From the IMG/VR virus record IMGVR_UViG_3300036770_003943, positions 124,001-188,000 of that record: a DNA stretch of 64,000 nt. One strand, 5' to 3'. Made by a program: the position numbers and the translations under genes. Below the pieces are notes generated by a model, which searched no databases, was not told the origin of the DNA, and saw only the letters and a program-made list of their open reading frames with translations. Of the stretch, positions 28,610 to 52,392 are shown piece after piece. The stretch's first letter is position 1; each line of letters opens with the position of its first letter.

Positions 28610-28625
28610 TTGCGTTTTACTATCA

Positions 28626-28631
28626 TAAATA
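28626..28631 (+). promoter_or_regulatory. Putative late promoter heading the GT/radical-SAM cluster
   Basis: TAAATA, then AAACTAGTATATAAT and a GGAG SD before ATG 28661. Confidence 0.55.
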
Positions 28632-28660
28632 GATTAAACTAGTATATAATGGAGTTCTGA

Positions 28661-29014
28661 ATGGATGACAAGCTAAAAGCAGCTTTGGAATTTAGTAACT
28701 ATAGACTTACGCTAAACAATCAAAAACAAAACCTTAAGCAACGTATGATAACCATGTTAACCATTGGTTATGCCAGTGCGTTGTTTACAGCTCGTCCTGA
28801 GCTTATTGTATTTGTCAAACAGTTAGTAGACTCAAATGTAGAAAAATTTGTTCTATTAGATGATAATGATAATCCTGTTTTGATCAGTGACTTAGCGGAT
28901 TTTCATAGTAAATTAATCAGTGCTTATTCCGAAGCTATGAATGAATATTACACCGAATCACAAAATCTAAAAAAACACCGCGACACAAAAAGTTTAATTG
29001 GAATAAATGGCTAA
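28661..29014 (+). CDS. Hypothetical protein, possibly fibre-assembly chaperone-like
   Basis: 117-aa helical ORF with SD; first gene of the cluster. Confidence 0.65.
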   Translation: MDDKLKAALEFSNYRLTLNNQKQNLKQRMITMLTIGYASALFTARPELIVFVKQLVDSNVEKFVLLDDNDNPVLISDLADFHSKLISAYSEAMNEYYTESQNLKKHRDTKSLIGING

Positions 29015-29903
29015 CATGGACAAGGGTGTTTTATTGATTGCCTATAATAATGACTATATTGCCTACGAAAAGTTAGCAGCATTAGCAGCGAGATCTGTCA
29101 AACAAAATATGTTGGTTAATCATGTTACATTGCTAACAGATACTCCTACTTTTGCTGCGGTCAAGAGAGAATTCAGTGAATCGGAAATACTAGACACATT
29201 TGATCATATTATTGTAGAAGATATAAAACATGAACCAAACAGTCGAGCTCATAGAGATAGCCCATGGTACGAATTTTTAACACAGTTTAATAACAAAAAC
29301 AAACACAGCATATTTGAAAAAAGTCCGTATCGTCAAACTTTAATGATCGATGTTGATTATTTTATCGGCAATAATAGCTTAGACGCAGTATTCGACACTG
29401 ACTACGAACTAGCCATGTACAAAGACGCAATCAGTGTAAGAAACTATCAGCCTAGAATCTGGGAACGAAAGCTTCAACCGAATGGAATTGATATGTGGTG
29501 GAGTACCGTGATATATTGGCGCAATGATAGTGAAACTGCTCGATTATTTTTTGATTTGTGGCAACATGTCAAAGAAAACTATCAATACTATAAATGGGTA
29601 TACAAATTTCCAGGCGCTTTATTCAGAACAGACTATGCTGTTAGCATAGCCAGTCATATCTTAAACGGTCAAATTGGCCACGGACTGATACAAGAATTAC
29701 CAGGCCGTACTATGCGGTTCAGTGAACAAATTGATGATATTGTGGAGTTTTCTAGCTTGAATGACTATGTTTTACTTTGTCCTGATCCAAAAGAATTATG
29801 GAAAAATATTTGTAGCCGAATACGTAGAGAAAACGTACATTTAATGAACAAAATGGCCATACTCAGGCACTATCATAAATTAAAAGAACTAGCTTATGAA
29901 TGA
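29007..29903 (+). CDS. Nucleotide-diphospho-sugar transferase (GT-A fold, GT8-like)
   Basis: GVLLIAYN start, SPY..TLMIDVDY (DxD), WSTVIYW, RTDYAVSIA.H. Confidence 0.65.
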   Translation: MANMDKGVLLIAYNNDYIAYEKLAALAARSVKQNMLVNHVTLLTDTPTFAAVKREFSESEILDTFDHIIVEDIKHEPNSRAHRDSPWYEFLTQFNNKNKHSIFEKSPYRQTLMIDVDYFIGNNSLDAVFDTDYELAMYKDAISVRNYQPRIWERKLQPNGIDMWWSTVIYWRNDSETARLFFDLWQHVKENYQYYKWVYKFPGALFRTDYAVSIASHILNGQIGHGLIQELPGRTMRFSEQIDDIVEFSSLNDYVLLCPDPKELWKNICSRIRRENVHLMNKMAILRHYHKLKELAYE

Positions 29904-30738
29904 AGGTTATTTAATCATTGGTGCTAACAAAGACACAGTTAGGCAAACCAATTTGTTAATCAGTAGCATACGCTATAATGATCCCACACGTCCAGTAGCA
30001 GTAGCTACACAAGACAAATCTATACAAAAAGAATTTACTGCTGACACAGTAGTTGTTGTACCTTATGAAGATGATATTACCACTGTGTTTAAATCTTATC
30101 TTTTAAGTCCTTATGAAAAAACCATAGCATTTCAAACTAATCAACTGCTAACAGATTTTACACCAAGTGTTTGGGAAAATCTAAGAGGTATGAATAGCAT
30201 AGTTATTTTGAAAACAAGACATAGCCACTGTATGTCAGCAATTGATCCAATGGTCTACTATAAATCATCAACTGAACAAAAAAGTTTTTCCACACATAGT
30301 TTAATTAATGCGATATATTTTAACAAAGAACAAGGATCAGATTATGTGTTTGGTTTAGCTGTAGTAATTGCCAGTAATTATGATCAAAACTTGTTAATCG
30401 ACTATTTCAGTAACAAAGAAAATAGCATGCCTGCTTTTCCTAAGTATATATGGCCTGAATGGTTAATGAGTTTGTTTTACCAATGTTTAGAATACAAAAT
30501 TGTCAAGTATGACTTTGTTAGACTAATAGACCTACGTCGACGAGAAATGATTGATCAACAAGACGATTGGAATAGCAGTAATTGGCAGGATTTTTTAACT
30601 TATTGGGTAACACAAGACGGACTAGTTAAAATAGAAAATTTTATACAACTAGGTCTTATTCAGTTTAGAGGGGACGAATGGTTAGATGATCGATACATCA
30701 AACATCTAGAATCTAGATTTGCCAATGGAAAATCTTGA
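29896..30738 (+). CDS. Degenerate paralog of the preceding GT8-like protein (no DxD)
   Basis: EGYLII start and SPYEKTIAFQTNQ align with SPYRQTLMIDVD. Confidence 0.5.
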   Translation: MNEGYLIIGANKDTVRQTNLLISSIRYNDPTRPVAVATQDKSIQKEFTADTVVVVPYEDDITTVFKSYLLSPYEKTIAFQTNQLLTDFTPSVWENLRGMNSIVILKTRHSHCMSAIDPMVYYKSSTEQKSFSTHSLINAIYFNKEQGSDYVFGLAVVIASNYDQNLLIDYFSNKENSMPAFPKYIWPEWLMSLFYQCLEYKIVKYDFVRLIDLRRREMIDQQDDWNSSNWQDFLTYWVTQDGLVKIENFIQLGLIQFRGDEWLDDRYIKHLESRFANGKS

Positions 30739-31696
30739 ACTAGAAGATGGCGAATTTGATGTACAAAAAACTATTCTTAGGACTCGATCTCCTAAGAATA
30801 TAACGTACTATATTGAGTATGATAAACTAACCGGCGGTGTGCTGACTATTAGCCCAGAGGTTATTCAAACAGATAGTCCTCGAACTCTGGTACTAGAACA
30901 ACCAGCAAATGAAATAATAACTAATGTATTTGGCAGTAAAGTGCCCATGGCCAGCCTGCGAGTTGTCTACGATCAAAAAACAAAAACTAAATTACTAACC
31001 AAGCAGTCGGATTTGGTTTACAATGAGTTCGCTTATAGTCATCCAGATAGTGAGCTTAAACAATTTGTACACTTGAATGTTGATGTCGTATCCAAAAGAA
31101 TAAGAGTTAAATTACGCTCAGATCAATTTAAAGAACAAATAACCAATGAACTTTTAAACGAAACAGAAATAGCACAATACCCAGATTATCTAGACGTTTA
31201 TTGCTATAATACCTATGATTCTAGTATTTTATATGACAAGCTATCCATTAGATTAAGAGACTTGTTTATGGGTAAGGATATCTTTTTCAACTGCTCTTGG
31301 CTACCAAATACTAAATCAGACTTTGCGAACTACAATTTTGTCTACTATGGCAAGGGCTTAAAGATAACTGTAAGCTGTAACGATATTTATGAAACTCAAA
31401 GACGTCAAGTACACAAACCATTAATTGTCTATAAACAAAGAAGAAAAACCATTATGCTTCAAAGTCTCATGAGTAATCATGAATTTTATTATATAAACAA
31501 CGCAATAACTTTTTACTGTATGAAAGAATCAGACCCTGACATCTTGCTAGATACCATTACAGTTACTAGTGATCAATTAAACGATTTTAACATGATAAAG
31601 ATGTCAGTTAGCTTCACTGAACCCGTAAAAATAATAAGTAATTATTCCCATATACACATGGAACACACAGATGAAAATTCCTATTACCAATTTTGA
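30719..31696 (+). CDS. Hypothetical protein (325 aa)
   Basis: Long ORF translationally coupled within the cluster. Confidence 0.7.
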   Translation: MPMENLELEDGEFDVQKTILRTRSPKNITYYIEYDKLTGGVLTISPEVIQTDSPRTLVLEQPANEIITNVFGSKVPMASLRVVYDQKTKTKLLTKQSDLVYNEFAYSHPDSELKQFVHLNVDVVSKRIRVKLRSDQFKEQITNELLNETEIAQYPDYLDVYCYNTYDSSILYDKLSIRLRDLFMGKDIFFNCSWLPNTKSDFANYNFVYYGKGLKITVSCNDIYETQRRQVHKPLIVYKQRRKTIMLQSLMSNHEFYYINNAITFYCMKESDPDILLDTITVTSDQLNDFNMIKMSVSFTEPVKIISNYSHIHMEHTDENSYYQF

Positions 31697-32639
31697 TATA
31701 GTTTTTATCAGTTATGATGAACCTAACGCCGATAAAAACTACAGTGATTTGTTAAACAAAGCACCATGGGCTAAAAGAATTCATGGAGTAAAAGGGTTCG
31801 ACAGCGCACATAAAGCAGCAGGGCAGGCTGCTGAAACAGATAGATTTATTACAGTAGATGCTGACAATATAGTACATGATGAGTTTTTTAATGTAGAATT
31901 AGAAATGGATAAGATTGGTCGACATGATACTATAAGCTGGGCAGGTAAGAATATGATAAATGGATTAGTTTATGGAAACGGCGGCATAAAAATTTGGAGC
32001 AAGAATGTAGTTGAACAGATGAGAACTCATGAATTAGCCGACGACGATAAAAGTAAAGTAGATTTTTGTTGGGATATTTACTACCATCAAATGAATAATA
32101 TCTACAGTGATGTTTACAATAATGCCAGTGCTTATCAGGCCTATAGGGCAGGATTTCGAGAAGGTGTAAAATTACTACTTGATGGAGGTCAACAAGTCGA
32201 TCCTGTCAACATACGAACTCTAGTTCATGATCGTAATTACAAAAGAGTCTTAGTATGGGCCAGTGTCGGATCAGATGTAGATAATGGTCTATGGGCTATG
32301 TATGGAACACGATTAGGCATACAAATGGCTAACTTTGATAAAAACTTTGATTTTACCTTGGTAAGAGATTTTGATTGGCACAGTGATTTTTGGAAACGAG
32401 AAATAGCTGACAAATTCAAAGGACAAGATGGTTTATGTAAGGGCACTGGATGGACTTATAGTATAGAAAAACTAAAACAGGAAATATACAAGCTAGGGCA
32501 AGATCTTAGAAATAGATTGGATTTAGAAATAGCTGAATTAGATCAAAACGGGAGTAGATTTTTCAAAGAGAGTTTTATCAATCCACCCAGACTGGGTGCA
32601 ATGGTAAAAGAATCACATGTAAATAATACCATAGCATGA
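31671..32639 (+). CDS. GT-A-fold glycosyltransferase-like protein, paralog 1 of 4
   Basis: FISYDEPNAD.NY, RIHGVKG..SAH, VDAD (DxD), NGLVYGNGGIK, FREGVK. Confidence 0.6.
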   Translation: MKIPITNFDIVFISYDEPNADKNYSDLLNKAPWAKRIHGVKGFDSAHKAAGQAAETDRFITVDADNIVHDEFFNVELEMDKIGRHDTISWAGKNMINGLVYGNGGIKIWSKNVVEQMRTHELADDDKSKVDFCWDIYYHQMNNIYSDVYNNASAYQAYRAGFREGVKLLLDGGQQVDPVNIRTLVHDRNYKRVLVWASVGSDVDNGLWAMYGTRLGIQMANFDKNFDFTLVRDFDWHSDFWKREIADKFKGQDGLCKGTGWTYSIEKLKQEIYKLGQDLRNRLDLEIAELDQNGSRFFKESFINPPRLGAMVKESHVNNTIA

Positions 32640-33583
32640 ATCACAACTATATTAAATTAGAACATAAAAATCCTGACAATCTAGATTGGTTCGTGGTCAA
32701 TTGGTGCTTGGGCAATGTCTGTAACTATAGTTGTAGTTACTGTCCAGAGTATCTACACAATTCTACCAAGCCTTGGCCCTTACCGGATGTCATAAAAAAG
32801 TTTATTATACAGATAAAGAATCATTTTTTTGACAAACAGATATATTTTGAATTTACCGGTGGCGAAGTTACCATGTACAAGCATTTTGAAAGCATAGCTA
32901 AATTTTGCCATAGTATAGGTATCAGAGTAGGTTTAATCAGTAACGGATCAAGGACCATAAGATATTGGCAAGAAAATAAACAGTATTTTGATCATATCTG
33001 CTTGAGCTTCCATAGCGAGTTTGCTGACGCCGATCATTTTGTAAATGTAGTAAAAACTGTACACATGGATGTGAAGACTCATGTCAACATCATGATGAAC
33101 CCAAATCATTTTGATCTAGGACTCAACGTAGCTAGACGATGTAGGGAATTAGGTAATCTCAGTCTTGCCCTACAACCTTTATTACATGATATGAATCGGG
33201 GTCTTTTTGAATATAGCGACAATCAAAAAACTGTTCTAGACAATCAATATGAACTAATTACTAAAAATATTCCTATCTATAAACAGTATGATTACTATCG
33301 TGGAGCCATGCGTAAAGTTCGAACAGATGGATCGAGTGAAATAGCCAATACCTACGATTTTATTAATGAAAAAAGCAATGACTGGAGTGGGTGGAATTGC
33401 TATGCTGGCCTTGAACAAATAGTAGTTGACACTGACGGAACTGTGTTTAGGGGATGGTGTAAGCAAGGCGGCGAAATAGGCAACATTCATGCTGAAGTAC
33501 ATTTGCCTGAACTGCCAGTATTGTGTGCCAGTACTAACTGTGCTTGTGGTCTAGATATTATGTGTACGAAAGAAAAGATATGA
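32636..33583 (+). CDS. Radical SAM protein with C-terminal Twitch/SPASM-like Cys cluster (rSAM 1)
   Basis: CNYSCSYC, TGGEV, SNGS; C-terminal WNCYAG...DG..WC...C...C.C..D. Confidence 0.9.
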   Translation: MNHNYIKLEHKNPDNLDWFVVNWCLGNVCNYSCSYCPEYLHNSTKPWPLPDVIKKFIIQIKNHFFDKQIYFEFTGGEVTMYKHFESIAKFCHSIGIRVGLISNGSRTIRYWQENKQYFDHICLSFHSEFADADHFVNVVKTVHMDVKTHVNIMMNPNHFDLGLNVARRCRELGNLSLALQPLLHDMNRGLFEYSDNQKTVLDNQYELITKNIPIYKQYDYYRGAMRKVRTDGSSEIANTYDFINEKSNDWSGWNCYAGLEQIVVDTDGTVFRGWCKQGGEIGNIHAEVHLPELPVLCASTNCACGLDIMCTKEKI

Positions 33584-34971
33584 CTGAACAGTTAGACATA
33601 ACTCAAACTATTTGTCGATATGCTTGGGATTACCCAGTGGTAAACTTCAGCAGACACGAGCTAAGAAACTGCTGTAGAACTTCGGGTTCCTACGTAAGTA
33701 AAGAAGATTTGGCTCTAGGCCCTGATTTGTTTAAAAAATTTAAGCCAATCATCGAAATTAAAACCGACCTCCTTCGAGGTATTAGATCTAGTCAATGCGA
33801 AACCTGTTGGATTACTGAAAGAGCTGGAAGTCAAAGTCCAAGACTTGGCTTTGAACATTTTGTATCATTGGTACAGAAAAAATACCCCAACTTAACTAGG
33901 CTAGAATTAGTAGAAAAACTTAAAAATCTTACTGACAGTGAGATTCAAGAGCTGGCTAATTGGGAAAGTCCTAATAGGATTGAAATCATGCTGAGTAACA
34001 CCTGTGATTTAAAATGTCTTTATTGTAATCATGTGTTCAGTAGCCAATGGGCAGCGGAAAAATTAAAGTATAGGGAAATAACTGACAATGAAATTCACAA
34101 GCCAATTTCCAACGAATTTGAATCAGTTTGGTGGGAATGGTTTCATAAATCAGCAGTCAAAACAGTCAAACATATTACATTTGTAGGTGGTGAACCTTTA
34201 CTTAACGAAAAAACTTATGAATGGCTAGATAGATTATTGAACTTCTATAATAATCAAACCGACTATACAGCTGACTTGTTTATTGTTACTAATTTTAATT
34301 GTACTGAAAAACTTTTTAATAGATTTATGAAATTCGTAGAGAGAATAGCTGATCCACAAAGTAAAATGGATTTAGGTATTGGTATTAGTTTTGAAAGTAT
34401 CGGCGACAAAAATGAATTTATTCGTACAGGATTAGACTGGGATAGATTTGATTCGAATATTAAAAAATTATTAGAATACCTTAGGGTAAACCAGGTATCT
34501 TGGGATAAAATTTTTATTAATGCTTTGCCTGCCTTTAATTGCCTTAGCCTAAGTGATTTACCAAACTATATTACCTACATAAGAAGTCTAAATGAAAAAT
34601 ATAGGTTAACCGACTTACCACGCAAACATAGACCTTCCTCTGGAATAGAAATAAGTTTTACTCACGTGGCTAATCCTGAAAGATTATCTCCTTTTATATT
34701 AACTAATGATTATATCAAACACATTGATCATGCTATTAATCTTGTCAAGGAATTAAACCAATTGGATATCTATAAAAGAGATTTTGTAAATTATCTGCTT
34801 ACACTAAAAGATGGCATCGTTAATAACAATGAAAAACTCGATAAGCAGGTCTATTTAAGAAAACGATTTATCGACGATATTACTCAAATCTCAGCAAGAA
34901 GAAATCTAGATTTACATTCTACATTTCCAGAGATGCAGGAGTTCTTTGATCTTTGTAAAAGCTATGCTTGA
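33580..34971 (+). CDS. Radical SAM protein with N-terminal Cys-rich domain (rSAM 2); start at MTEQLD
   Basis: N-terminal C..AW...CC...C..C; core CDLKCLYC, VGGEP, VTN. Confidence 0.9.
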   Translation: MTEQLDITQTICRYAWDYPVVNFSRHELRNCCRTSGSYVSKEDLALGPDLFKKFKPIIEIKTDLLRGIRSSQCETCWITERAGSQSPRLGFEHFVSLVQKKYPNLTRLELVEKLKNLTDSEIQELANWESPNRIEIMLSNTCDLKCLYCNHVFSSQWAAEKLKYREITDNEIHKPISNEFESVWWEWFHKSAVKTVKHITFVGGEPLLNEKTYEWLDRLLNFYNNQTDYTADLFIVTNFNCTEKLFNRFMKFVERIADPQSKMDLGIGISFESIGDKNEFIRTGLDWDRFDSNIKKLLEYLRVNQVSWDKIFINALPAFNCLSLSDLPNYITYIRSLNEKYRLTDLPRKHRPSSGIEISFTHVANPERLSPFILTNDYIKHIDHAINLVKELNQLDIYKRDFVNYLLTLKDGIVNNNEKLDKQVYLRKRFIDDITQISARRNLDLHSTFPEMQEFFDLCKSYA

Positions 34972-35710
34972 TATATTTTTTCTAAGTTACAACGAACCTT
35001 ATGCTGACGACAATTACAAAAAATTGTTACAGCGATTTCCTACTGCTAAACGGGTAAATGGCATAACGGGTTTTAGAGCGGCACATCAAGAATGTGCTCG
35101 ATTAAGCATGACTGAAAACTTTTATGTAGTAGACAGCGACGCAATAATACAGGATGATTTTAACTTTAGTTTCAAACCTAGCAAGTTTATGCGTTGGTGG
35201 GATATACCGCAAACCAAGTTTATTTGTCTTTTTCAAAGTGTAAATCCCATTAATGGATTGATTTATGGTCATGGAGGTGTTAAAATACTACCTAAGCAGG
35301 GCATACTTGAATCGGATACTAATAGCGTAGATTTTACTACGGGATCAAATTTACCAATTAAAATGTTTGATCAAGTCAGCAATGTTACTAAGTTTAACCA
35401 TGATGAGTTTAGTACTTGGCGCTGCGCCTATAGGGAAGCAGTTAAGTTAGTCATGAACTTGAATAATCAAAGTATATACTACAAATTAAATGATGATGTG
35501 CTGATCAATCAATATTTTAAGGACAGTAAGGACCGTCTAAGAGTATGGTGTAGTCTGGGTAAAAATAAGCCTTATGGGGAATACTGTATAGAAGGTGCTC
35601 GGCAGGGTAAATTCTACGCCCAGTCGAACAAAGACAATAATGACGCATTGTCTCTAATAAACGATTTAGAATGGATGAAAAATGAGTTTGATAAATTCAT
35701 TAAATCATAG
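34964..35710 (+). CDS. GT-A-fold glycosyltransferase-like protein, paralog 2; start at MLDIFF
   Basis: FLSYNEPYADDNY, KRVNG, VDSD, NGLIYGHGGVK, REAVK. Confidence 0.6.
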   Translation: MLDIFFLSYNEPYADDNYKKLLQRFPTAKRVNGITGFRAAHQECARLSMTENFYVVDSDAIIQDDFNFSFKPSKFMRWWDIPQTKFICLFQSVNPINGLIYGHGGVKILPKQGILESDTNSVDFTTGSNLPIKMFDQVSNVTKFNHDEFSTWRCAYREAVKLVMNLNNQSIYYKLNDDVLINQYFKDSKDRLRVWCSLGKNKPYGEYCIEGARQGKFYAQSNKDNNDALSLINDLEWMKNEFDKFIKS

Positions 35711-36674: not shown

Positions 36675-36675
36675 T

Positions 36676-41847: not shown

Positions 41848-43099
41848 CAGTAAAACTTTTTGTATAATGCCCTTTATACATCAGAATATAAAACAAGAAG
41901 GTAAGGTCAGTGCTTGTTGGCGTTATCCGGATAGGATCGGCGATTATCGCAAACAGACTTTGCCAGAAATTTGGAACAGCGAACAAACCAAAGAACTAAG
42001 ACGTAGTTTGCTTAATAATGAGCGACCGCAAGGATGTCGTAGTTGTTGGGATTTCGAAGATAGCCGAGTTCCTAGTACTAGACAAACTTGTTTGGATACT
42101 TATAAAGAACAGTATAAAATAAATTTTGATCAGATTATTGCCAAAGTAAACGATGATTACTCTATGCCTTACCAGCCACGTTCAATTGAAATACGCTTTG
42201 ATAATACCTGTAATTTTAGATGTAGACACTGCAGCCCTACTTATAGCAGCCAGTGGGAAAATTTGGCTTTTCAAAATTCCGAAGTAAAACAATTTTTTGA
42301 TCAACATGAAGTAGGCAGGTTAGAAAAAAAGCATATTAGTTTGCCCGATACAACCATGGAGGAATTCATTACAGCAATTCCTTATCTTAAAGAAGTTCTT
42401 ATCGCAGGAGGAGAACCGTTACAGCAACTAAGACATTGGCGTGCTATGGATGCTATGTTACCCTATGCTGAGAACATAACTCTTAGCTATAATAGCAATC
42501 TTAGTTCGTTAGGTATAAAAAATTATAATGTCTTAGACTATTGGCCGAAGTTTCACAAAGTTGTTCTTAGAGTAAGCATAGACGGTGATTCAAGTACCTT
42601 TAGTTATTTTAGAACCAATGGACAGCTTGATCTAGTACTGGCCAATGTTGAACAACTACATAAGTTAACCAACTTAGAAATGAGTCTAACTACCACTGTA
42701 AGCATATATAATATATCTAGACTAATTGATATAGTTAAGCTGGTAAATCAAGCAGGGGGATACTTTCATACCAGTCTTGTTCAATATCCTAGGCCCATTA
42801 ATCCTAAAGTATTACCCAAGCACATCAAAGAAAAAATTTCTGATGAATGGTATTCTTTTACCAAAACCTTGAAAGAAAACACTAGACTTTGGGAGCATGA
42901 CATTTGGCTCAATGAGGATCTAGTTGAAAAACAATGTAAACGTATCAATTGGTACGGTCACTATGTAATAAAATATATGAATGCCGAAGATTATTCCAAC
43001 AGCCTACCAAAAACTAAAGAGTACATTAGGTTCTTGGATCAACTTAACAATACTAGTTTTGCTGATGTTTATCCTGAACTTGCTGAGTTAATAAATTGA
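41840..43099 (+). CDS. Radical SAM protein with N-terminal Twitch-like domain (rSAM 6)
   Basis: FCIMPF...G..SAC, C.SC; core CNFRCRHC, AGGEP, YNSN. Confidence 0.92.
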   Translation: MFNSKTFCIMPFIHQNIKQEGKVSACWRYPDRIGDYRKQTLPEIWNSEQTKELRRSLLNNERPQGCRSCWDFEDSRVPSTRQTCLDTYKEQYKINFDQIIAKVNDDYSMPYQPRSIEIRFDNTCNFRCRHCSPTYSSQWENLAFQNSEVKQFFDQHEVGRLEKKHISLPDTTMEEFITAIPYLKEVLIAGGEPLQQLRHWRAMDAMLPYAENITLSYNSNLSSLGIKNYNVLDYWPKFHKVVLRVSIDGDSSTFSYFRTNGQLDLVLANVEQLHKLTNLEMSLTTTVSIYNISRLIDIVKLVNQAGGYFHTSLVQYPRPINPKVLPKHIKEKISDEWYSFTKTLKENTRLWEHDIWLNEDLVEKQCKRINWYGHYVIKYMNAEDYSNSLPKTKEYIRFLDQLNNTSFADVYPELAELIN

Positions 43100-45105
43100 T
43101 GTAAGTTAGCCAGTAAAATAGGATTTACATCGGCTAATTTGTTTGATCTTATCTTTTCCATTTTTTCAATATAGGTCATAAATTGTTCTGCCAGCTTATG
43201 ATTGCCTTTTGAACCACTACATAGTTTGCGTATTTTTTTAACACTGACTAATATAGATTCTGGTAAACTAGTATATCTAGGATGTATGGAGGTAAAATTG
43301 GCTTGATAATTATCGCACCAGTCAATAATGTTTTTGTAATAAGACTTAGGCAGTATGTTAACAGACAGATATGATGGGTCAAACGCTGGCTGTATTTTAA
43401 AAAATCCGTCATATTCTACACTGTCTAAGGAACAAGGGTTATCTTCATTAAAGTAATTTCTGTATTGATTAGTCCACCAAGTAATCAAGTCTTGAATGTT
43501 ATAGACATTTAATACGCTAAGAGTGGTGCTCATTATAATTAAAAAGTTATCGTTCTGTCGACTAATCTCAAGCCAGTAGGTTAAGGCACTGCTGACAGAA
43601 TGTTTTTCTCCTGACCAAATACTGGGATAACGTATGTAATCGTTCAATGACCCATAGCCATCTATGCTTAAATTAAGGTATATTTTTTTGAATCTATTCA
43701 AGTTGGCTAGTAATCGAGCACTTGGTATATAGCTACAGTTAGTGTATATTTCTAAACTGACCTGTTCGGGCTTTCCTTGCTCGCATATCTGGTCAATGAA
43801 CTTGACAAACTCAGGATTAATCATTGGCTCTCCGCCAGTAAATTTTACTAGATTAACCGTGAGTAAGGACTGTTTACTGAGTTTAAATTGTAAATTGTCT
43901 AATTTTGGATAGACTATTCTTTTTAAGTTCGAGTCTTTTTCTGACAACATACTGTTTAATTTTAGTTCGTCATCGTGCCAAGTTGTGCTAAGGTTGCTGT
44001 TACAAGTCAGGCAGGCCATATTACAGTAGTTCCCAAATCCTACTTCAAGAAATTCTAATCTTGGATTAGGAAACTTTGGCCTACGATGCAGATAACCATG
44101 GTTATACAATATATTTGAGCCTAATCTCATGCTCAATCCTACATCAGTTTCGTTATCAGCTTGTTCTTCTTTGTAGCATTTGTGGCAACCTTCTAAGGAT
44201 TGATTGTTTAATATATGCTGTCTTGCTGTTTGCCAATAAGGGCTGGTATAAAATACACTGTCTATATCTTGTTGACGTATACTGGGTCGTTGATCAGTCA
44301 ACTTCATATAGTCATTAATATGATCATGATTGGTGATCTTTTCATAGACACTGCGTTTATAGACTGTGTCATAACGACAACATAGTTTACTTTGACCGTC
44401 TGGCTTGTACTGTATATGATTCCATGGAAGTATACAAAAAACTGGATTCAGTTGAGCATATAACTTGCCAGCATAATTTTCATAGTGGCTATTAGTTGAA
44501 TCAACTAGTTCTATCAGTGTATTGTGGAATCTCCATCCAATGGTCCAGTTCCTATGTAGTATTTCGTTCAAGGCAAAATCAAATTTTGAGTCTTTGTACT
44601 TGGATCTATTGAAACCCATGTACATGTATTGATTTTTATTGTTGTCTAATTTAGTTAGTTTGCTTAGTATAGCTAAAAATTTATTTGTGTCGTCGACTAG
44701 GTCTACATGATGAAATTCAAATTTTGATTGACGAAATGCTTGCCAGCAGGCCTTAAAAAATTCTATATTATAGAAGTTTTCTGGTATATGTTTTTGGTAA
44801 TTATCAAGGTCAATTACCATTGGTGTTGAAAATTTTTCTTCGGCAGACAACGTTAGTTCGAACAAACTGTTGAGATCTCCGTCCCATGATAAAAGATATT
44901 TGAATATATCTATATTATTTTGATTTTTATCGTAGACAACGAATTCGGGACGATAGCCTTGTAGATCTACTGGGCTTCGATGACCAAAAGATCTTAGGAA
45001 TAATCTAAATAGGCTGTCTCCTGTACCTATGTATCTTAGAAAATTATTAGTACATCGGCCTCGTTTTTGATTAAGCAAAGCCTGGTTAATAAGAAAATAA
45101 CTCAT
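43069..45105 (-). CDS. Radical SAM protein with ~220-aa extra N-terminal domain, inverted orientation (rSAM 7)
   Basis: FCILPW...DG...CC, C.KC; core CNMACLTC, TGGEP, YTN. Confidence 0.9.
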   Translation of the reverse strand: MSYFLINQALLNQKRGRCTNNFLRYIGTGDSLFRLFLRSFGHRSPVDLQGYRPEFVVYDKNQNNIDIFKYLLSWDGDLNSLFELTLSAEEKFSTPMVIDLDNYQKHIPENFYNIEFFKACWQAFRQSKFEFHHVDLVDDTNKFLAILSKLTKLDNNKNQYMYMGFNRSKYKDSKFDFALNEILHRNWTIGWRFHNTLIELVDSTNSHYENYAGKLYAQLNPVFCILPWNHIQYKPDGQSKLCCRYDTVYKRSVYEKITNHDHINDYMKLTDQRPSIRQQDIDSVFYTSPYWQTARQHILNNQSLEGCHKCYKEEQADNETDVGLSMRLGSNILYNHGYLHRRPKFPNPRLEFLEVGFGNYCNMACLTCNSNLSTTWHDDELKLNSMLSEKDSNLKRIVYPKLDNLQFKLSKQSLLTVNLVKFTGGEPMINPEFVKFIDQICEQGKPEQVSLEIYTNCSYIPSARLLANLNRFKKIYLNLSIDGYGSLNDYIRYPSIWSGEKHSVSSALTYWLEISRQNDNFLIIMSTTLSVLNVYNIQDLITWWTNQYRNYFNEDNPCSLDSVEYDGFFKIQPAFDPSYLSVNILPKSYYKNIIDWCDNYQANFTSIHPRYTSLPESILVSVKKIRKLCSGSKGNHKLAEQFMTYIEKMEKIRSNKLADVNPILLANLHQFINSASSG

Positions 45106-45117
45106 TGTGTTTTGTGT

Positions 45118-45131
45118 GATAAATATTTATC
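45118..45131. promoter_or_regulatory. Perfect 14-bp palindrome carrying TAAATA on both strands (putative bidirectional late promoter)
   Basis: GATAAATATTTATC lies in the 41-bp gap between divergent starts 45105(-) and 45147(+). Confidence 0.55.
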
Positions 45132-45146
45132 TTAGTATATAATGAT

Positions 45147-45374
45147 ATGCCAGATCTTAAAGAACTATCCCTAAGACAGCTACAACGTGAAGCAGCTAGA
45201 GTAATCAGCAGCATGCCGGCTACCAATGATAATATTTATAAGTTTAATAAAGCCAGCAGACATAATAGTCAAGGATGGTATATAGCGGCCATAGAATGGT
45301 ATATTAATGAATATGGTGGTCTGCCCAGCGAATGTGGACCAGGCAAAGATGTAACATTTATCATGGAGGAATAA
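45147..45374 (+). CDS. Hypothetical protein (75 aa)
   Basis: ORF after the palindrome; contains the GGAGG SD for the next gene. Confidence 0.7.
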   Translation: MPDLKELSLRQLQREAARVISSMPATNDNIYKFNKASRHNSQGWYIAAIEWYINEYGGLPSECGPGKDVTFIMEE

Positions 45375-45375
45375 T

Positions 45376-46038
45376 ATGGAAGAAATGTTTTGGAAAGAAT
45401 TGATTAAAAGTAGAGCTCAAAATTTTACATGGGATATGACTGCAGAAGTTGATAAAGAATTAATTGAAAGCATTGCTACCGACATACATCACAGAGCACC
45501 TAGTAAACAAAATAGAGTACAGTATCAGATGCATATCTTTGATTGGAGTGATAGTGAATTTAGAAATGATTTTTATCAATTTGCCGTAGATAGAGATAAT
45601 CCTAATCCAAGATATAATCCACAGACTCTCGCTCACTACTTGTTTGTTTTTGTTGGCAGAAGTCCTGGGTATTTTGCCAATAGTTTTAGTAATTGGGGTC
45701 CTGGCATTCACCCACAAATCAGCCATTTAGAAATTGGTCTTGCCAGTCATATGCTTATACATGGTGCGTTTGTTAGAGGGTTAGCCTCTGGATTTTGTAG
45801 ATGCTTTGATCACAATTATACTAAGGCACCAGCTATTGCGACGAAATTAAACTTACCATCAAACAAGTCTGATCATATATTTTTAAGTGTGGGCGTTGGT
45901 ATTGAAAGCTATAATAAATTTCAAACATTTAATCCATTTACAAATTCCATGATTCCAGTATCTAAAAACAGCGGAACCATTTGGTACCATGAACCAAAAC
46001 CTGATCCTGCTGAATACATTGTTTATCATACCGCATGA
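45376..46038 (+). CDS. Nitroreductase-family (FMN) protein
   Basis: LIKSR...V..ELI......APSKQNRVQY and GLASGFCRCF match the nitroreductase N-terminus and core. Confidence 0.65.
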   Translation: MEEMFWKELIKSRAQNFTWDMTAEVDKELIESIATDIHHRAPSKQNRVQYQMHIFDWSDSEFRNDFYQFAVDRDNPNPRYNPQTLAHYLFVFVGRSPGYFANSFSNWGPGIHPQISHLEIGLASHMLIHGAFVRGLASGFCRCFDHNYTKAPAIATKLNLPSNKSDHIFLSVGVGIESYNKFQTFNPFTNSMIPVSKNSGTIWYHEPKPDPAEYIVYHTA

Positions 46039-47201
46039 CTGATTTAACTACTAGCGAATACGATTTTACTAAGATTCCCTATAAAGACATAGTGCGAGTT
46101 GGTCAACGCACTATGTTATATAGAGATATGTTTACAGTGAGCTGGCTATTGGGTCGCTACTGTAATTACCGTTGTAGCTACTGCTGGCCCTATGCTCGTA
46201 GTGATACCAAAGATCATCGTCCTACTCCTTTGATGTTACACACAGTAAATGAAATTAAACGTCAAGCTAGAGAACGTGGGTTTAATAGTTTTCATTTTAG
46301 TCTAAGTGGCGGAGAACCTACTTTTCATCCTTCTTACATACCCATCTTGAACCATCTCAATGAAGATGCTGCCAATACTAACTATACCAGCGTACATATG
46401 ACCAGTAACATGAGCAGACCTATTCGATGGTTTGAAAATGAATATGTTCCAGCAGTACGTAATTTTCATCGTGCTAGTATTACAGCCAGTTATCATCGAG
46501 AACATGTTAATAGTAAAGAAAAAATGGCTGAGTTTGCTGACAAGTTAATCTTATGCCAAGAATATGATACTCAAATTACCATAAACATGGTAATGGTACC
46601 AGAAAACTTTGATCAGTTATATGAAGAAGCTCTTTATTTTCATGAACGTGGAATTAATGTTACCCTAAAGCCACAGAGCGATCCTACTGCCAGTCGTGTA
46701 GTCGATGGATATACCAAAGACATGTATAAAAAATTACATAATGGTATGCCGCAACGTGCCTTTACTGAATATAAGGCCAGACGAGCCGGTCTAGTGGAAA
46801 GGCCTCGCCCAACCTATATGATTGATCGCGCCGATCCTCTTAGAGAACAACAGGCTGCTATCTCAGCTCACTATCAAATTGAGTTTATAGATAAAAATGG
46901 TCAGTCATGGTACATGGATCAAGCCGAACGGTTTAATGCTTTTAACTTTAACAATTTTAAAGATTGGGAGTGTAGCAGTGGATATCGAAGTATTATTATT
47001 CGTGAACCAGACGGCACAATTAAGCGTAGCTACAGTTGTGCCGAAGTACCCTTAGGGCATATCGAAACCGGCTTTAAGTTATATGACAAACCCATGCCAT
47101 GTGGTAGTTCTAGTTGCGTAAGTAGCGCAGATAGCAAAATACCTAAACGTGCCCCTGGAACTAAGTTACCCTTATTTCCAGTTGATCGAACTTATGAGTG
47201 A
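46035..47201 (+). CDS. Radical SAM protein with C-terminal Cys cluster, paralog of rSAM 1 (rSAM 8)
   Basis: CNYRCSYC, SGGEP, TSN; C-terminal WECSSG...DG...SC...C...C..SAD. Confidence 0.92.
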   Translation: MTDLTTSEYDFTKIPYKDIVRVGQRTMLYRDMFTVSWLLGRYCNYRCSYCWPYARSDTKDHRPTPLMLHTVNEIKRQARERGFNSFHFSLSGGEPTFHPSYIPILNHLNEDAANTNYTSVHMTSNMSRPIRWFENEYVPAVRNFHRASITASYHREHVNSKEKMAEFADKLILCQEYDTQITINMVMVPENFDQLYEEALYFHERGINVTLKPQSDPTASRVVDGYTKDMYKKLHNGMPQRAFTEYKARRAGLVERPRPTYMIDRADPLREQQAAISAHYQIEFIDKNGQSWYMDQAERFNAFNFNNFKDWECSSGYRSIIIREPDGTIKRSYSCAEVPLGHIETGFKLYDKPMPCGSSSCVSSADSKIPKRAPGTKLPLFPVDRTYE

Positions 47202-48510
47202 TACTTTTTGTCCAATCCCTTGGATATTTCAAGCTGTACGTAACAACGGCGATATTCGTATCTGTTGTCAAGCCAACGTGACTGAAAATCAAGGAGTAGT
47301 ACGCAAGGAAGATGGAACCCCATTTAATGCTGGTAAAGATGTGATGGAAGAGGCACGCAATGCCGAATTGATGCGAGCAGTTAGGCTTAACATGCTCGAG
47401 GGACAATGGAGTACAGAATGCGGTCGTTGTCAGCAGGAAGAAGCCAGCGGGCTTAGTAGTAGACGACAATATGAAAAGGAAAATTGGAAGTTTAATATCG
47501 AAGCTGCCAAAAAAATTACTAATCAGGATGGATCAGTTACTGGTCCGAAATTAGAATACTACGATCTACGGTTTGGTAACCTGTGTAATCTAGCCTGTCG
47601 TATGTGCGGACCAACTGACAGTCATACATGGTACGAGCAATGGACAGACTATCATGGATCTCACAGTTATACTGATACTCATGGCACAGTTAAATTAACA
47701 CGTAACGACAATGGAAGATTGACTACCAATGACTATGATTGGCACGGCAGCGAAACATTTTGGCAGCAGTTAGAAGCCAACATTCTTAATATACGACATG
47801 TATATATGGCAGGCGGTGAACCCATGATGATAGAACGCCACTATGAGTTTTTACAGCGTTGTATTGATCAAGGCCAATCAAGCAAGATGATTTTAGAATA
47901 TAATACCAACATGACAAACTTGCCTAACCGTGTTCTAGACATGTGGACTAAGTTCTTACAAGTCCGTGTAGGTGCTAGTATTGATGGTATAGAAAATGTC
48001 TTAGAATATCAGCGTTGGCCACTAAAATGGAATCAAGCCTACAAAAATCTACAAAAATTAGATCAATACGCAATAGATAATAAAAACATACTAGCTTGGC
48101 TTGCCTGTACTATAACTGCTTACAATGTATGGCACATACCTGAATTCATGCGATGGAAACTTGAACAAAGTGGTTTTAAGAAAATTAATAGTACTCTAAA
48201 ACGCCCAATAATTACTCATCATGTAGCCCATGGACCCAAGCGTGTTAATATAAGAATTTTACCAGATGGGCTAAAACAAGATTTATCCAAATTCTATGAG
48301 AAGCATGGAAACTATTTTGCCAGCAAATATTCAAGTGAAATAAGCCAATCCGCTACAATGATATTGAATAGCATACTTAAGTACACAACCACTGGCAACT
48401 ATTCTGATAAATTAACTGAATTTGTTAAGTTTACTAGGTACTTAGACAAAGCAAGAAATAACAATATTCTAGATATTGTCCCACAGTATAGAGCCTTATT
48501 TGACCAATGA
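47194..48510 (+). CDS. Radical SAM protein with N-terminal Twitch-like domain (rSAM 9); start at MSDTFC
   Basis: FCPIPW...GDIRICC, C.RC; core CNLACRMC, AGGEP, YNTN. Confidence 0.92.
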   Translation: MSDTFCPIPWIFQAVRNNGDIRICCQANVTENQGVVRKEDGTPFNAGKDVMEEARNAELMRAVRLNMLEGQWSTECGRCQQEEASGLSSRRQYEKENWKFNIEAAKKITNQDGSVTGPKLEYYDLRFGNLCNLACRMCGPTDSHTWYEQWTDYHGSHSYTDTHGTVKLTRNDNGRLTTNDYDWHGSETFWQQLEANILNIRHVYMAGGEPMMIERHYEFLQRCIDQGQSSKMILEYNTNMTNLPNRVLDMWTKFLQVRVGASIDGIENVLEYQRWPLKWNQAYKNLQKLDQYAIDNKNILAWLACTITAYNVWHIPEFMRWKLEQSGFKKINSTLKRPIITHHVAHGPKRVNIRILPDGLKQDLSKFYEKHGNYFASKYSSEISQSATMILNSILKYTTTGNYSDKLTEFVKFTRYLDKARNNNILDIVPQYRALFDQ

Positions 48511-49064
48511 AAATTTTAATATCAGGTAATTCAAAATTAAATTTTGCTCATTCATTGAACAAAGTACTGATTGATCATGACTTGAAGTTCATAAGTCGTG
48601 CTAGCTCAGGTCATGATTTGACTAGACATGATGATCAACTAGCTTTTGCTAAATTAGCCTGCGAGTTTGACGTTGTTATTATTAATAGTGCTTTATGGAA
48701 ATTTAATCAAACTGTTTTACTTGATTATGTCTATAAAGCCTGTGTCGAAGCCAAACATAGAAACTATATCATTTGTATAGGTAGCACAACGGATCGAGTT
48801 AAAAAAGGAGGAGCTTGGTTATATAATGCTGAAAAAAAAGCTCTGCGTGACTATTGTAATACACTAGGATTAAATGGTGTTTGGGAAAGTGGCCCAAGAA
48901 TAACCTTAGTTAGTTTAGGCACACTTACTAATAATCAAGCTAAACATCCTACAAGACGTTGTATGGATATTGACTTGGCTGCTGGTTATATAAAATGGGT
49001 TATTGAACAACCAGCTGGAGTTCATGTAAATGAACTCAGTATAGATCCTTTACAGAATCCCTAA
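48507..49064 (+). CDS. Short-chain dehydrogenase/reductase-like protein
   Basis: MKILISG start, DVVIINS, ICIGS, YNAEK (YxxxK). Confidence 0.7.
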   Translation: MKILISGNSKLNFAHSLNKVLIDHDLKFISRASSGHDLTRHDDQLAFAKLACEFDVVIINSALWKFNQTVLLDYVYKACVEAKHRNYIICIGSTTDRVKKGGAWLYNAEKKALRDYCNTLGLNGVWESGPRITLVSLGTLTNNQAKHPTRRCMDIDLAAGYIKWVIEQPAGVHVNELSIDPLQNP

Positions 49065-52368: not shown

Positions 52369-52392
52369 TGTTCACTCCTATATAATATACTT

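Follow-up and report, generated by a model that had tools for sequence, protein, structure and literature searches.

What does a jumbo phage build with a 20-kb island of six glycosyltransferase-like genes, a methyltransferase and nine radical-SAM (rSAM) enzymes of uncharacterised families, placed directly behind its tail-fibre genes? The question arises from a 64,000-nucleotide stretch (hereafter, the window; positions 124,001 to 188,000 of IMG/VR record IMGVR_UViG_3300036770_003943), in which a preliminary description had noted such a block and interpreted it as a late-expressed assembly line that builds and modifies a glycan or cross-link on virion proteins. The gene content described there was confirmed by our analysis, whereas the proposed interpretation is supported only in part. 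The features are listed in Table 1, and genes are referred to below by their first coordinate.

Table 1. Features of the island and its upstream border, with the observations on which each assignment rests. FamA is our name for a new family with a predicted GT-A fold; L numbers designate individual related loci.
Position	Strand	Assignment	Supporting observations
27638..28609	+	Last fibre-like gene (323 aa), with a (GY)8 run at residues 231-247; conserved upstream neighbour of the module and candidate substrate	Homologs directly precede the module in about 32 related loci, in L001 and L005 (shared D.AR.FFN.GG motif) and in RsoM2USA (ORF355); only viral relatives in the Atlas
28625..28650	+	Promoter-like composite: ATAAATA, 11 nt, then TATATAAT, ending 10 nt before the ATG	Composite occurs exactly three times in the window, each directly upstream of a start codon
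28661..29014	+	Conserved 117-aa protein at the head of the module; possibly a fibre chaperone or adaptor; does not look like a precursor peptide	33-73% identical in related loci, 36% to RsoM2USA ORF354; conserved along its whole length; no Cys
29007..29903	+	GT8-like glycosyltransferase A	Placed by the Atlas next to GT8 clusters (features 0.96; structure TM 0.64/0.57); orthologs in all related loci
29896..30738	+	GT8-like glycosyltransferase B, a remote paralog of 29007	hhalign probability 99.1%, E 1e-18; positional orthologs in all loci
30719..31696	+	Three tandem beta-sandwich (FN3/Ig-like) domains; non-enzymatic; candidate scaffold or acceptor	AlphaFold pLDDT 82.6; Foldseek matches to tandem FN3 domains, macroglobulin domains and N4 tail proteins and, among viral models, to uncharacterised Caudovirales proteins and minor tail proteins
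31671..32639	+	FamA type 1, with a DxD motif	See text
32636..33583	+	rSAM subfamily iii (C-terminal Cys cluster)	PF04055 E 1.4e-11
33580..34971	+	N-terminal-twitch rSAM; the 'core' type that accompanies FamA in RsoM2USA, L001 and L005	NF033640 at 190 bits; best match of the module rSAM in L001, L004 and L005
34946..35710	+	FamA type 2	Corresponds to the C-terminal half of the roughly 530-aa fused homologs
35682..36674	+	FamA type 1, second copy	41% identical to 31671
36649..37359	+	FamA type 2, second copy	33% identical to 34946
37349..38200	+	Class-I SAM-dependent methyltransferase fold (residues 105-283) behind an N-terminal extension	Atlas structure TM 0.5-0.74 to methyltransferase clusters; conserved in L001, L004, L005, L007 and many loci
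38200..39372	+	rSAM subfamily ii (C-terminal Cys cluster)	PF04055 E 7.5e-12; orthologs 44-46% identical in many loci
39369..40445	+	rSAM subfamily ii, with a SPASM-like C-terminus	PF04055; PF13186 at 19.6 bits, just under its cut-off
40438..41847	+	N-terminal-twitch rSAM, very highly conserved	NF033640 at 427 bits; orthologs 72-92% identical in more than 120 protein clusters
41840..43099	+	N-terminal-twitch rSAM	NF033640 at 315 bits; N-terminal PF13186 E 2.5e-10
43069..45105	-	N-terminal-twitch rSAM with a roughly 215-aa N-terminal extension; convergent with the first operon	NF033640 at 240 bits over residues 221-663
45119..45143		Intergenic palindrome ATAAATATTTAT followed by TAGTATATAAT; promoter-like element for 45147 (+)	The ATAAATA also reads toward 45105 (-)
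45147..45374	+	Conserved 75-aa protein that heads rSAM arrays in relatives	51-61% identical in L088, L090, L098 and L099, always just upstream of rSAM genes
45376..46038	+	Nitroreductase-fold (flavin) protein	9 of 21 homologs carry PF00881; the protein itself has no Pfam hit
46035..47201	+	rSAM subfamily iii	PF04055 E 4.5e-13; orthologs 55-69% identical in many loci
47194..48510	+	N-terminal-twitch rSAM	NF033640 at 371 bits
48507..49064	+	Small Rossmann-like protein, possibly a truncated SDR; last gene before the convergent thyX	Only faint SDR signals; homologs 41-55% identical lie inside rSAM arrays elsewhere
60833..61687		Tenth, QueE-like rSAM, outside the block

Are the genes what they appeared to be? 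Each of the nine rSAM open reading frames has exactly one CxxxCxxC motif and matches PF04055, and BLASTP comparison divides them into the three subfamilies that had been proposed. The first (33580, 40438, 41840, 43069 and 47194) shares four invariant N-terminal Cys, and all five members score above the curated cut-off of 170 bits for NCBIfam NF033640 (N_Twi_rSAM). The members of the second (38200 and 39369) are 28% identical and those of the third (32636 and 46035) 23% identical, with the additional Cys clusters in both cases located toward the C-terminus. The two GT8-like paralogs were likewise confirmed, as were four GT-A-like paralogs (31671, 34946, 35682 and 36649), which are 24-41% identical and share an invariant DxD. 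The AlphaFold model of this FamA family has a pLDDT of 90.8, and its only neighbours in the PDB are GT-A glycosyltransferases and sugar nucleotidyltransferases, although these matches are weak (E about 1e-3, TM 0.3-0.37) and FamA could be a nucleotidyltransferase. The class-I methyltransferase fold and the nitroreductase-fold protein were also confirmed, whereas the SDR assignment is only faintly supported.

Junctions within the block overlap by 1-29 nt almost everywhere, in keeping with the tight coupling noted at the outset. However, the gene at 43069 lies on the minus strand, so that there are three transcription units, and the gene at 30719 encodes a predicted triple FN3/Ig-like protein and not an enzyme.

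Is the association with the fibre genes an accident of this genome? It is not: the order of fibre genes, 117-aa gene, GT8-like gene and FamA is conserved in about 45 related contigs and in Ralstonia phage RsoM2USA, and the longer order of huge fibre protein, 26099, 26715, 27638, 28661, 29007 and onward to FamA holds in every long related locus and in RsoM2USA. In more distant phages the fibre-like gene still travels with the module even where the rest of the fibre block is elsewhere; in L001 and L005 the module follows DHFR-ThyA-epimerase, yet a gene resembling 27638 directly precedes it. Conserved synteny among relatives is partly inheritance and is not proof of a functional link.

Do the rSAM enzymes belong to a single assembly line with the glycosyltransferases? 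This part of the earlier proposal is too strong, as the rSAMs are an accessory and highly variable addition to a glycosyltransferase/methyltransferase core. Of 42 related phage loci, 17 keep the core and have no rSAM, and the others have from 1 to at least 8. More distant phages swap in B12-rSAM, Rieske, fatty-acid-desaturase-type and Asp/Arg-hydroxylase genes. Arrays of the same rSAM families also occur in Bdellovibrionota chromosomes with neither glycosyltransferases nor fibres, and across 18 chromosomal loci the common neighbours are further rSAM/SPASM genes rather than sugar genes. In cultured Bdellovibrio and Halobacteriovorax, on the other hand, remote relatives of the N-terminal-twitch family adjoin genes for UDP-sugar dehydrogenase, epimerase and DegT aminotransferase.

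Late expression, which had been inferred from a TAAATA motif shared with baseplate genes, is not shown by the promoter evidence. The motif is indeed found at both proposed positions (as ATAAATA at 28625 and 45119), and TAAATA is conserved upstream of the first gene in 46 of 56 relatives, against a background of 2.6%. However, the same composite also precedes the 75aa-199aa-101aa-ThyX operon, and in 21 of 56 relatives a sigma-70-like TTGAC-N15-19-TAnnnT is present in front of the module as well.

Our preferred explanation, held tentatively, is that the block is a hypervariable glycan-building and glycan-tailoring island, genetically tied to the distal tail-fibre genes of a lineage of aquatic jumbo myophages. 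In this view a constant core, which we take to be present in every relative, comprises the 117-aa protein, the two GT8-like transferases, the FN3-like protein, type-1 plus type-2 FamA transferases (duplicated here) and the class-I methyltransferase. This core would assemble a short methylated oligosaccharide from host nucleotide-sugars in the cytoplasm, on a phage-encoded protein, for which the most likely acceptors are the fibre-like product of 27638 and/or the FN3-like product of 30719. The variable shell, here the nine rSAMs with auxiliary Fe-S clusters, the nitroreductase-fold flavoprotein and the small SDR-like protein, would remodel the sugar units by radical chemistry such as C-methylation, epimerisation, dehydration or oxidation, and the flavoprotein may act as reductant or as a redox tailoring enzyme. 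The analysis itself establishes the gene content, folds, paralogy, synteny and variability, together with the absence of membrane, RiPP and DNA-precursor parts from the block; the acceptor, the chemistry and the timing of expression are inferences, and sequence alone does not distinguish a virion protein from any other target.

Several lines of evidence are supportive of this view. Six of the 21 genes have glycosyltransferase-type folds and one a methyltransferase fold, and a structural-type FN3-like protein sits between the glycosyltransferase genes. No protein of the cluster has a hydrophobic segment (maximum KD19 1.52), which argues against Und-P-linked or envelope pathways. The rSAM 40438 is far more conserved across relatives than the fibre proteins, which are 27-57% identical, and this fits a small conserved substrate such as a sugar. 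The persistent fibre-gene order, the behaviour of the rSAMs as tailoring add-ons and the nucleotide-sugar genes beside their remote relatives in Bdellovibrio and Halobacteriovorax also count in its favour. Against it, there is no direct evidence of any glycan or of the acceptor, FamA matches GT-A structures only weakly, the bacterial rSAM arrays do without glycosyltransferases, and the other border of the island is thyX, whose operon shares the composite promoter motif.

Two alternatives survive about equally, and both appear unlikely. In the first, the rSAM/SPASM-twitch enzymes install cross-links or other modifications directly on a virion protein or a small peptide, as RiPP maturases and anSME do, with the glycosyltransferases acting separately. 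Most characterised SPASM/twitch rSAMs act on peptides or proteins, weak NCBIfam side-hits point to peptide maturases, and in bacteria the N-terminal-twitch rSAMs cluster mainly with other rSAM/SPASM genes. The Tyr/Gly-rich loop of 27638 is one possible site, as the (GY)8 run lies where homologs have a Tyr-rich loop; the nearest named family in the Atlas for this protein is PF27846 ('modification target Cys-rich repeat'), but with a score of only 0.69 this is no more than a lead. However, no Cys-rich repeat ORF, precursor-like peptide, RRE, leader protease or exporter was found in the window or in 160 loci. The small proteins 28661 and 45147 are conserved along their whole length and lack Cys-rich or Ser/Thr-rich cores, the rSAMs are far more conserved than the fibre proteins, and relatives without rSAMs keep the same fibre gene.

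In the second, the island makes a soluble glycoside, modified nucleotide-sugar or similar small molecule, or remodels a host glycan or protein (for example, for superinfection exclusion or takeover) rather than decorating the virion. All of the proteins are soluble, and the architecture of glycosyltransferases, a methyltransferase, many rSAMs and redox partners, with interchangeable oxygenases in relatives, resembles a secondary-metabolite cluster. The rSAM arrays exist on their own in Bdellovibrionota chromosomes, and the sigma-70-type promoter found in some relatives would allow expression before late genes. Nevertheless, the block holds no scaffold-forming enzyme (cyclase, NRPS/PKS, sugar-nucleotide synthase), no exporter and no self-resistance gene, and both the persistent linkage to the distal fibre gene and the embedded FN3 protein speak against this reading.

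The weakest alternative is DNA hypermodification, in which the GT-fold enzymes would glycosylate a modified base, and the methyltransferase and rSAMs tailor the appended sugar, to give a variable decoration that evades restriction. Phage DNA glycosyltransferases with GT-A folds do exist and cluster with thymidylate-synthase-like genes (bioRxiv 10.1101/2023.12.21.572611), the island abuts thyX here and ThyA/DHFR in L001 and L005, L001 carries a weak QueC-like gene inside its cluster, and hypervariability is typical of anti-restriction traits. This reading is nonetheless improbable, as the neighbour is a canonical ThyX (PF02511, E 6e-59) and ThyA sits with DHFR in relatives, all of which make ordinary dTMP; profile searches of the block returned no hydroxymethylase, nucleotide kinase, 5mYOX, DpdA or DNA-binding domain; FamA has D.D and not the R...DDD...EDY/F motif of the described DNA GT-A enzymes; the FN3-like protein and the fibre-like gene are hard to place in a DNA pathway; and the QueE-like rSAM elsewhere in the window is a separate DNA-modification candidate.

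How does the island compare with known systems? Five of its genes score above the cut-off of NF033640 over the full length, but this family has no assigned function, none is described by any paper in the library searched, and we found no report of arrays of up to five in one phage island. Sugar-modifying rSAM enzymes with auxiliary clusters (the twitch dehydrogenase BtrN, BlsE, DesII and AprD4), toward which there are weak NCBIfam side-hits, likewise combine an rSAM core and an auxiliary Fe-S cluster in the neighbourhood of glycosyl-transfer and sugar genes. In five of the nine enzymes here, however, the auxiliary Cys cluster is N-terminal, none reaches the cut-off of any characterised family, and searches returned no close solved structures.

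Phage DNA glycosylation clusters (T4 alpha/beta-GT; the 5hmC and 5hoC glycosyl/arabinosyl systems of bioRxiv 10.1101/2023.12.21.572611 and PMC13326640) also place several glycosyltransferases in one variable cluster near thymidylate-synthase-type genes, but they contain the base-precursor enzyme (hydroxymethylase or 5mYOX), a kinase and a dCTPase, none of which lies in this block, and they lack rSAM arrays and structural-type proteins. By analogy, and not on grounds of homology, the fibril glycosylation clusters of giant viruses (Mimivirus/Megavirinae) are large virus-encoded assemblies of glycosyltransferases, methyltransferases and sugar-modifying enzymes that decorate surface fibrils and vary in content between clades; those viruses infect eukaryotes, encode their own NDP-sugar synthesis and are not known to have arrays of rSAM/SPASM-twitch enzymes. 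The closest precedent is mycobacteriophage virion glycosylation (Freeman et al. 2023, Cell Host Microbe, as cited in PMC12619734), in which phage-encoded glycosyltransferases sit next to structural genes and the proposed cytoplasmic glycosylation of virion proteins alters interactions with the outside world. That system has one or two ordinary GT2/GT4-type enzymes, with no rSAM, methyltransferase or redox tailoring, and targets the capsid and tail tube of small siphophages, whereas here, where no glycan has been shown, six divergent GT-fold genes and up to nine rSAMs lie beside the fibre genes of a jumbo myophage.

The window is bases 124001–188000 of the 231,776-bp IMG/VR contig IMGVR_UViG_3300036770_003943, which belongs to a jumbo myophage distantly related to the Rak2 / PA5oct / Atu_ph07 group, its baseplate wedge protein being 36–41% identical to theirs. 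A megablast search of the whole block against GenBank phages returned no match, and relatives were found only by tblastn, namely Ralstonia phage RsoM2USA, the Vibrio phages K566 and K567 and a marine SAG virus. Upstream of the island lie a gp25-like baseplate protein, the wedge protein, a 2868-aa fibre-type protein and three smaller fibre-like genes. Downstream, on the opposite strand, lie thyX (PF02511, E 6e-59), three small genes, a DUF2201/VWA metallopeptidase-like gene and a MoxR-type AAA gene. The features are collected in the table below, and genes are named by their start coordinates in the window.

Features of the island and its surroundings (positions in the window; genes for which a single position is given are listed by start)
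Position	Strand	Feature
12810-13352 and 10647-11939 (-)		Free-standing HNH endonuclease (PF14279, E 4e-16) between an ATP-dependent DNA ligase and the gp25-like baseplate gene, with its own ATAAATA motif 14 nt upstream
14007-17450		Baseplate wedge protein
17447-26053		2868-aa fibre-type protein with a chitin/carbohydrate-binding CBM_5_12 module at residues 1959-1994 (E 2.9e-7)
26099		Smaller fibre-like gene
26715		Smaller fibre-like gene
27638-28609		Last fibre-like gene
28328-28378		Perfect (Gly-Tyr)8 run, residues 231-247 of the 27638 product, encoded by an imperfect 6-nt DNA repeat
28625		ATAAATA, start of the composite promoter-like motif before 28661
28661		117-aa gene
29007		GT8-like gene
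29896		GT8-like gene, remote paralog of 29007
30719-31696		Predicted string of three beta-sandwich FN3/Ig-like domains
31671		FamA (predicted GT-A fold)
32636		rSAM with C-terminal Cys cluster (pair with 46035)
33580		N-terminal-twitch rSAM, NF033640 190 bits (scored under the start 33544)
34946		FamA
35682		FamA
36649		FamA
37349		Predicted class-I methyltransferase fold, residues 105-283
38200		rSAM with C-terminal Cys cluster (pair with 39369)
39369		rSAM with C-terminal Cys cluster (pair with 38200)
40438-41847		N-terminal-twitch rSAM, NF033640 427 bits
41840		N-terminal-twitch rSAM, NF033640 315 bits
43069-45105	-	N-terminal-twitch rSAM, 678 aa, NF033640 240 bits
45119		ATAAATA, start of the composite motif before 45147
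45147		75-aa gene
45376		Nitroreductase-like gene
46035		rSAM with C-terminal Cys cluster (pair with 32636)
47194		N-terminal-twitch rSAM, NF033640 371 bits (scored under the start 47149)
48507		Small Rossmann-like protein, 185 aa, with faint SDR traces
28661>43099		First transcription unit
45105<43069		Second transcription unit
45147>49064		Third transcription unit
51085-51113	-	Composite promoter-like motif (ATAAATA, spacer, AGGTATATAAT) upstream of 50852-51079, heading the operon 75aa-199aa-101aa-thyX
51181-53847	-	MoxR-type AAA ATPase plus a DUF2201_N/DUF2201 (VWA-like, metallopeptidase-like) pair
57025-57744	-	Phytanoyl-CoA dioxygenase (PhyH) family 2OG-Fe(II) oxygenase (E 5.5e-12) among replication-type genes, another possible modifying enzyme outside the island
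60833-61687, with 61879-62313 and 62291-62965	-	Tenth radical-SAM gene, QueE-like (TIGR03963 E 1e-14, below cut-off), next to HIT-like and phosphoribosyltransferase-like genes

The gene content reported in the preliminary description was confirmed, with three corrections. The rSAM gene at 43069-45105 lies on the minus strand, so that the block comprises three transcription units; the product of 30719 is not an enzyme; and a tenth rSAM gene is located outside the block, where it may be part of a 7-deazaguanine-type DNA modification module such as is suspected for PA5oct (bioRxiv 10.1101/2025.03.31.646159). Gene junctions overlap by 1–29 nt nearly throughout.

Each of the nine rSAM proteins of the block carries one CxxxCxxC motif and matches PF04055, with E-values from 4.5e-13 to 8.7e-6, five above the gathering score and four slightly below it. 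By BLASTP they fall into the three subfamilies that had been named. Five pass, over their full length, the curated cut-off of 170 bits for NCBIfam NF033640 (N_Twi_rSAM, 'twitch domain-containing radical SAM protein'), while the other four score 35–55 bits and are not members. In all five, invariant C12, C30, C93 and C96 (40438 numbering) lie upstream of C149/C153/C156, and N-terminal PF13186 hits occur in 40438 and 41840. C-terminal Cys clusters are present in the remaining four, although only 39369 touches the SPASM model (PF13186 / TIGR04085), at 19.6 bits against a PF13186 cut-off of 21.5. Sequence searches of the PDB gave nothing useful for 40438 or 46035, and for 38200 only NifB at E 8e-4; no solved structure is close to any of the subfamilies.

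Pfam, PHROGs and NCBIfam searches gave nothing for 11 of the non-rSAM proteins. Neither 29007 nor 29896 matches the Glyco_transf_8 profile (CAZy GT8 / PF01501), and they are GT8-like by features and putative fold only. For 29007 the ESM Atlas gives a feature score of 0.96 to a GT8 cluster, and the model of its nearest cluster, rather than of the protein itself, aligns to a GT8 cluster at TM 0.64/0.57. The 29896 family is linked to it by hhalign (probability 99.1%, E 1e-18). The four FamA paralogs share an invariant DxD, with D63 and D65 invariant in 30 sequences, and a few homologs carry PF00535. The AlphaFold model of 31671 is confident (pLDDT 90.8), and its PDB neighbours are exclusively GT-A glycosyltransferases (WrtF, RmlT, SpsA, K4CP, TarS) and sugar nucleotidyltransferases (RmlA, HddC), but these matches are weak (best E 1.1e-3, TM at most 0.37), and a PDB sequence search with the FamA profile gave nothing useful. 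FamA is thus a strongly divergent member of the nucleotide-sugar-binding GT-A fold class, which glycosyltransferases share with nucleotidyltransferases of the RmlA/HddC type.

For 37349, the Atlas model (pTM 0.80) aligns over the methyltransferase-like region to several class-I methyltransferase clusters at TM 0.5–0.74, with no Pfam or PDB sequence hits. The product of 45376 has no Pfam hit and no useful PDB match, but 9 of 21 homologs at 42–53% identity carry PF00881 (Nitroreductase). The call of an SDR at 48507 was not borne out: there are no Pfam or PDB hits, the only signals being a 27-residue C-terminal match to NF038213 (E 5e-4) and a 22-residue match to an adh_short protein of the distant phage locus L001, and the protein is short for an SDR. 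The model of the 30719 product (pLDDT 82.6) has as structural neighbours tandem FN3 domains, macroglobulin domains, phage N4 tail proteins and minor tail proteins.

FamA has at least 8000 homologs in metagenomes, most of them fused type-1 + type-2 proteins of about 530 aa on phage-like contigs of up to 355 kb. Among cultured phages only RsoM2USA has it. In that phage the order is wedge, huge protein, fibres, then ORF354 (117-aa homolog), ORF353 (GT8-like), ORF352 and ORF351, ORF350 (FamA type 1), ORF349 (N_Twi rSAM), ORF348 (FamA type 2) and ORF347 (methyltransferase), which is the same order as in the window; the minimal module spans ORF347-355, where ORF355 encodes the 27638-like protein and ORF351 is the positional equivalent of 30719. 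The RsoM2USA paper analysed only the most abundant virion bands and says nothing on these ORFs. In about 45 long IMG/VR loci the order 17447 > 26099 > 26715 > 27638 > 28661 > 29007 > two positional genes > FamA is invariant, whereas what follows varies widely. In 17 of 42 loci with enough downstream sequence there is no rSAM at all, and FamA and methyltransferase genes run straight into thyX; the other loci have 1–8 rSAMs within 10 kb.

More distant phages differ further. Loci L001 and L005 place the module after DHFR-ThyA-epimerase rather than after the fibre block, yet a 27638-like gene with the shared D.AR.FFN.GG motif still sits immediately upstream of it, its product having a shorter Tyr/aromatic-rich loop at about the place of the (Gly-Tyr)8 run. 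The relative order AAA, DUF2201, small genes, thymidylate synthase, module is kept in L001, L005 and a further distant locus, L003. L001, L005 and another such locus, L007, carry other tailoring enzymes: a B12-binding rSAM, Rieske, fatty-acid-desaturase-type and Asp/Arg-hydroxylase genes, and methyltransferases. The cultured 255-kb Vibrio phage K566 has an array of at least three rSAM genes (OZ196521.1 161548-165950), including N_Twi relatives at 22% identity, with no FamA and no annotated fibre gene in the 19-kb stretch examined. The anatomy is thus a constant GT/methyltransferase core tied to the distal fibre gene, plus an interchangeable shell of redox and radical tailoring enzymes.

Orthologs of 40438 are 72–92% identical in more than 120 protein clusters at the 90% level, and this rSAM is unusually conserved, much more so than the fibre proteins encoded a few kb away (27–57%). 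A scan of one genome per prokaryotic species gave two kinds of hit. Close copies (52–72%) lie on MAG contigs, many binned as Bdellovibrionales or Pseudobdellovibrionaceae and one of 936 kb, together with FamA, the methyltransferase, the 75-aa gene and the other two rSAM subfamilies; these are probably phage contigs of the same lineage. Remote copies (25–36%) lie in genuine Bdellovibrionota chromosomes. In a 2.49-Mb Bdellovibrionales chromosome, five rSAMs of the same three subfamilies lie between yceG/gltB and AdoHcy hydrolase, with no GT. In cultured Bdellovibrio sp. HCB2-146 the N_Twi rSAM is followed, with overlapping stops and starts, by a UDP-glucose/GDP-mannose dehydrogenase, an NAD-epimerase/dehydratase and a DegT aminotransferase, and in Halobacteriovorax marinus it adjoins two DegT genes. 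However, in a pooled Pfam scan of 149 neighbours at 18 further chromosomal loci, the only recurrent neighbours were more rSAM/SPASM genes (22 of 149), so the sugar context is suggestive rather than general. The repeated binning of close relatives of the island into Bdellovibrionales/Pseudobdellovibrionaceae MAGs and the remote arrays of the same three rSAM subfamilies in genuine Bdellovibrionota chromosomes (L094-L097, L104, L110, L116, L118 and L122 from this search, and L115, L121, L133, L147 and L160) may be a clue to the host, or to the donor of the rSAM toolkit.

The TAAATA motif noted in front of the island is real and conserved. Besides the two sites of the island, (A)TAAATA also precedes structural genes at 2830, 12810, 26099 and 26715, and TAAATA occurs within 80 nt upstream of the 117-aa gene in 46 of 56 distinct relatives, against 2.6% of random 80-mers. 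Two results nevertheless forbid calling the island 'late'. The fuller composite, ATAAATA-N7-11-(T)AGGTATATAAT, occurs exactly three times in the window: before 28661, before 45147 and before the 75aa-199aa-101aa-thyX operon at 51079(-). Moreover, in 21 of 56 relatives the module is also preceded by a sigma-70-like TTGAC-N15-19-TAnnnT (background 1.1%), the promoter type reported for PA5oct (PMC7318152). A generic scan for sigma-70 promoters and terminators was at chance level.

The preliminary interpretation of a late-expressed assembly line that modifies virion proteins is partly supported: the gene content and the conserved linkage of GT-type genes to the fibre genes agree with it, whereas the late timing is not established. 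What the analysis itself establishes is the gene content, the order and its variation; the mechanism, including glycosyl transfer by any of these proteins, the attachment of a glycan to a virion protein and the radical chemistry, is inferred, and none of its steps has been observed. In the reading that we tentatively favour, although it falls short of being more likely than not, the core enzymes would use host nucleotide-sugars in the cytoplasm, since all the proteins are soluble, to build a short, methylated oligosaccharide on a phage protein. The best acceptor candidates are the fibre-like 27638 product, which always travels with the module, and the FN3-like 30719 product, which is encoded among the GT genes. 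The rSAM shell, with the putative nitroreductase-fold flavoprotein and the small Rossmann-like protein, would then alter the sugars by radical chemistry. No cluster protein has a hydrophobic 19-mer above KD 1.52, and the block accordingly lacks the membrane-embedded flippase, GT or polymerase components of phage serotype-conversion or LPS-modifying modules (Gtr, O-antigen).

It is possible, though less likely than not, that the island encodes a new class of virion glycoconjugate pathway, in which the phage-specific FamA family and the GT8-like enzymes put an oligosaccharide on a fibre-associated protein, and a combinatorial array of up to nine N-terminal-twitch and SPASM-like rSAM enzymes then performs sugar radical chemistry not yet described for any virus. 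The resulting lineage-specific surface chemistry would set host range or shield the fibres, and the same rSAM toolkit would be shared with Bdellovibrionota chromosomes.

Other explanations appear unlikely. Direct radical modification of a protein or peptide fits the general habits of SPASM/twitch enzymes and the odd (GY)8 loop of 27638. The nearest named family for the 27638 product in the Atlas is PF27846 ('tSAM_targ_Cxxx_rpt, modification target Cys-rich repeat', found in Uroviricota), at a score of only 0.69, so that a curated family of phage proteins thought to be rSAM targets does exist. No Cys-rich repeat ORF was found, however, in the window or in any of the relatives' loci retrieved, all candidates being antisense artefacts; the small proteins are conserved throughout, there is no precursor peptide or RRE, and no peptidase or ABC domain lies in the block, so that the criteria of a RiPP biosynthetic cluster are not fulfilled. 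A host-directed or small-molecule product, about equally unlikely, fits the secondary-metabolite look of the cluster and the free-standing bacterial rSAM arrays, but there is no scaffold enzyme and no exporter. DNA hypermodification is the least likely: although favoured by the thyX/ThyA neighbourhood and by the hypervariability, it is weakened by the lack of any base-precursor enzyme (dNMP hydroxymethylase, 5mYOX, DpdA) and of an accompanying kinase within 28661-49064, by the canonical ThyX and ThyA+DHFR, by the structural-type proteins in the module, and by the separate QueE-type candidate elsewhere in the window.

Nine radical-SAM enzymes in one phage operon set is exceptional. Five belong to a family with thousands of members and no known reaction, and the four FamA genes belong to a glycosyltransferase-fold family that Pfam and PHROGs do not model. 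The island is a conserved yet hypervariable locus next to the receptor-binding apparatus of a widespread lineage of aquatic jumbo phages. If it decorates the virion, it would extend phage glycobiology from simple glycosylation to radical-tailored glycans, give function to several large orphan enzyme families and name a new determinant of phage-host specificity, a question that RsoM2USA, as a cultured carrier of the minimal module, makes directly accessible. Literature searches found no description of the island, of its enzyme families or of a function for N_Twi rSAMs. Virion glycosylation by phage GTs is known from mycobacteriophages, and DNA glycosylation clusters are known as well; the island could be seen as a variation on such systems, with real potential to be more than that, as neither contains anything like this rSAM array, the FamA family or the embedded FN3-like protein.
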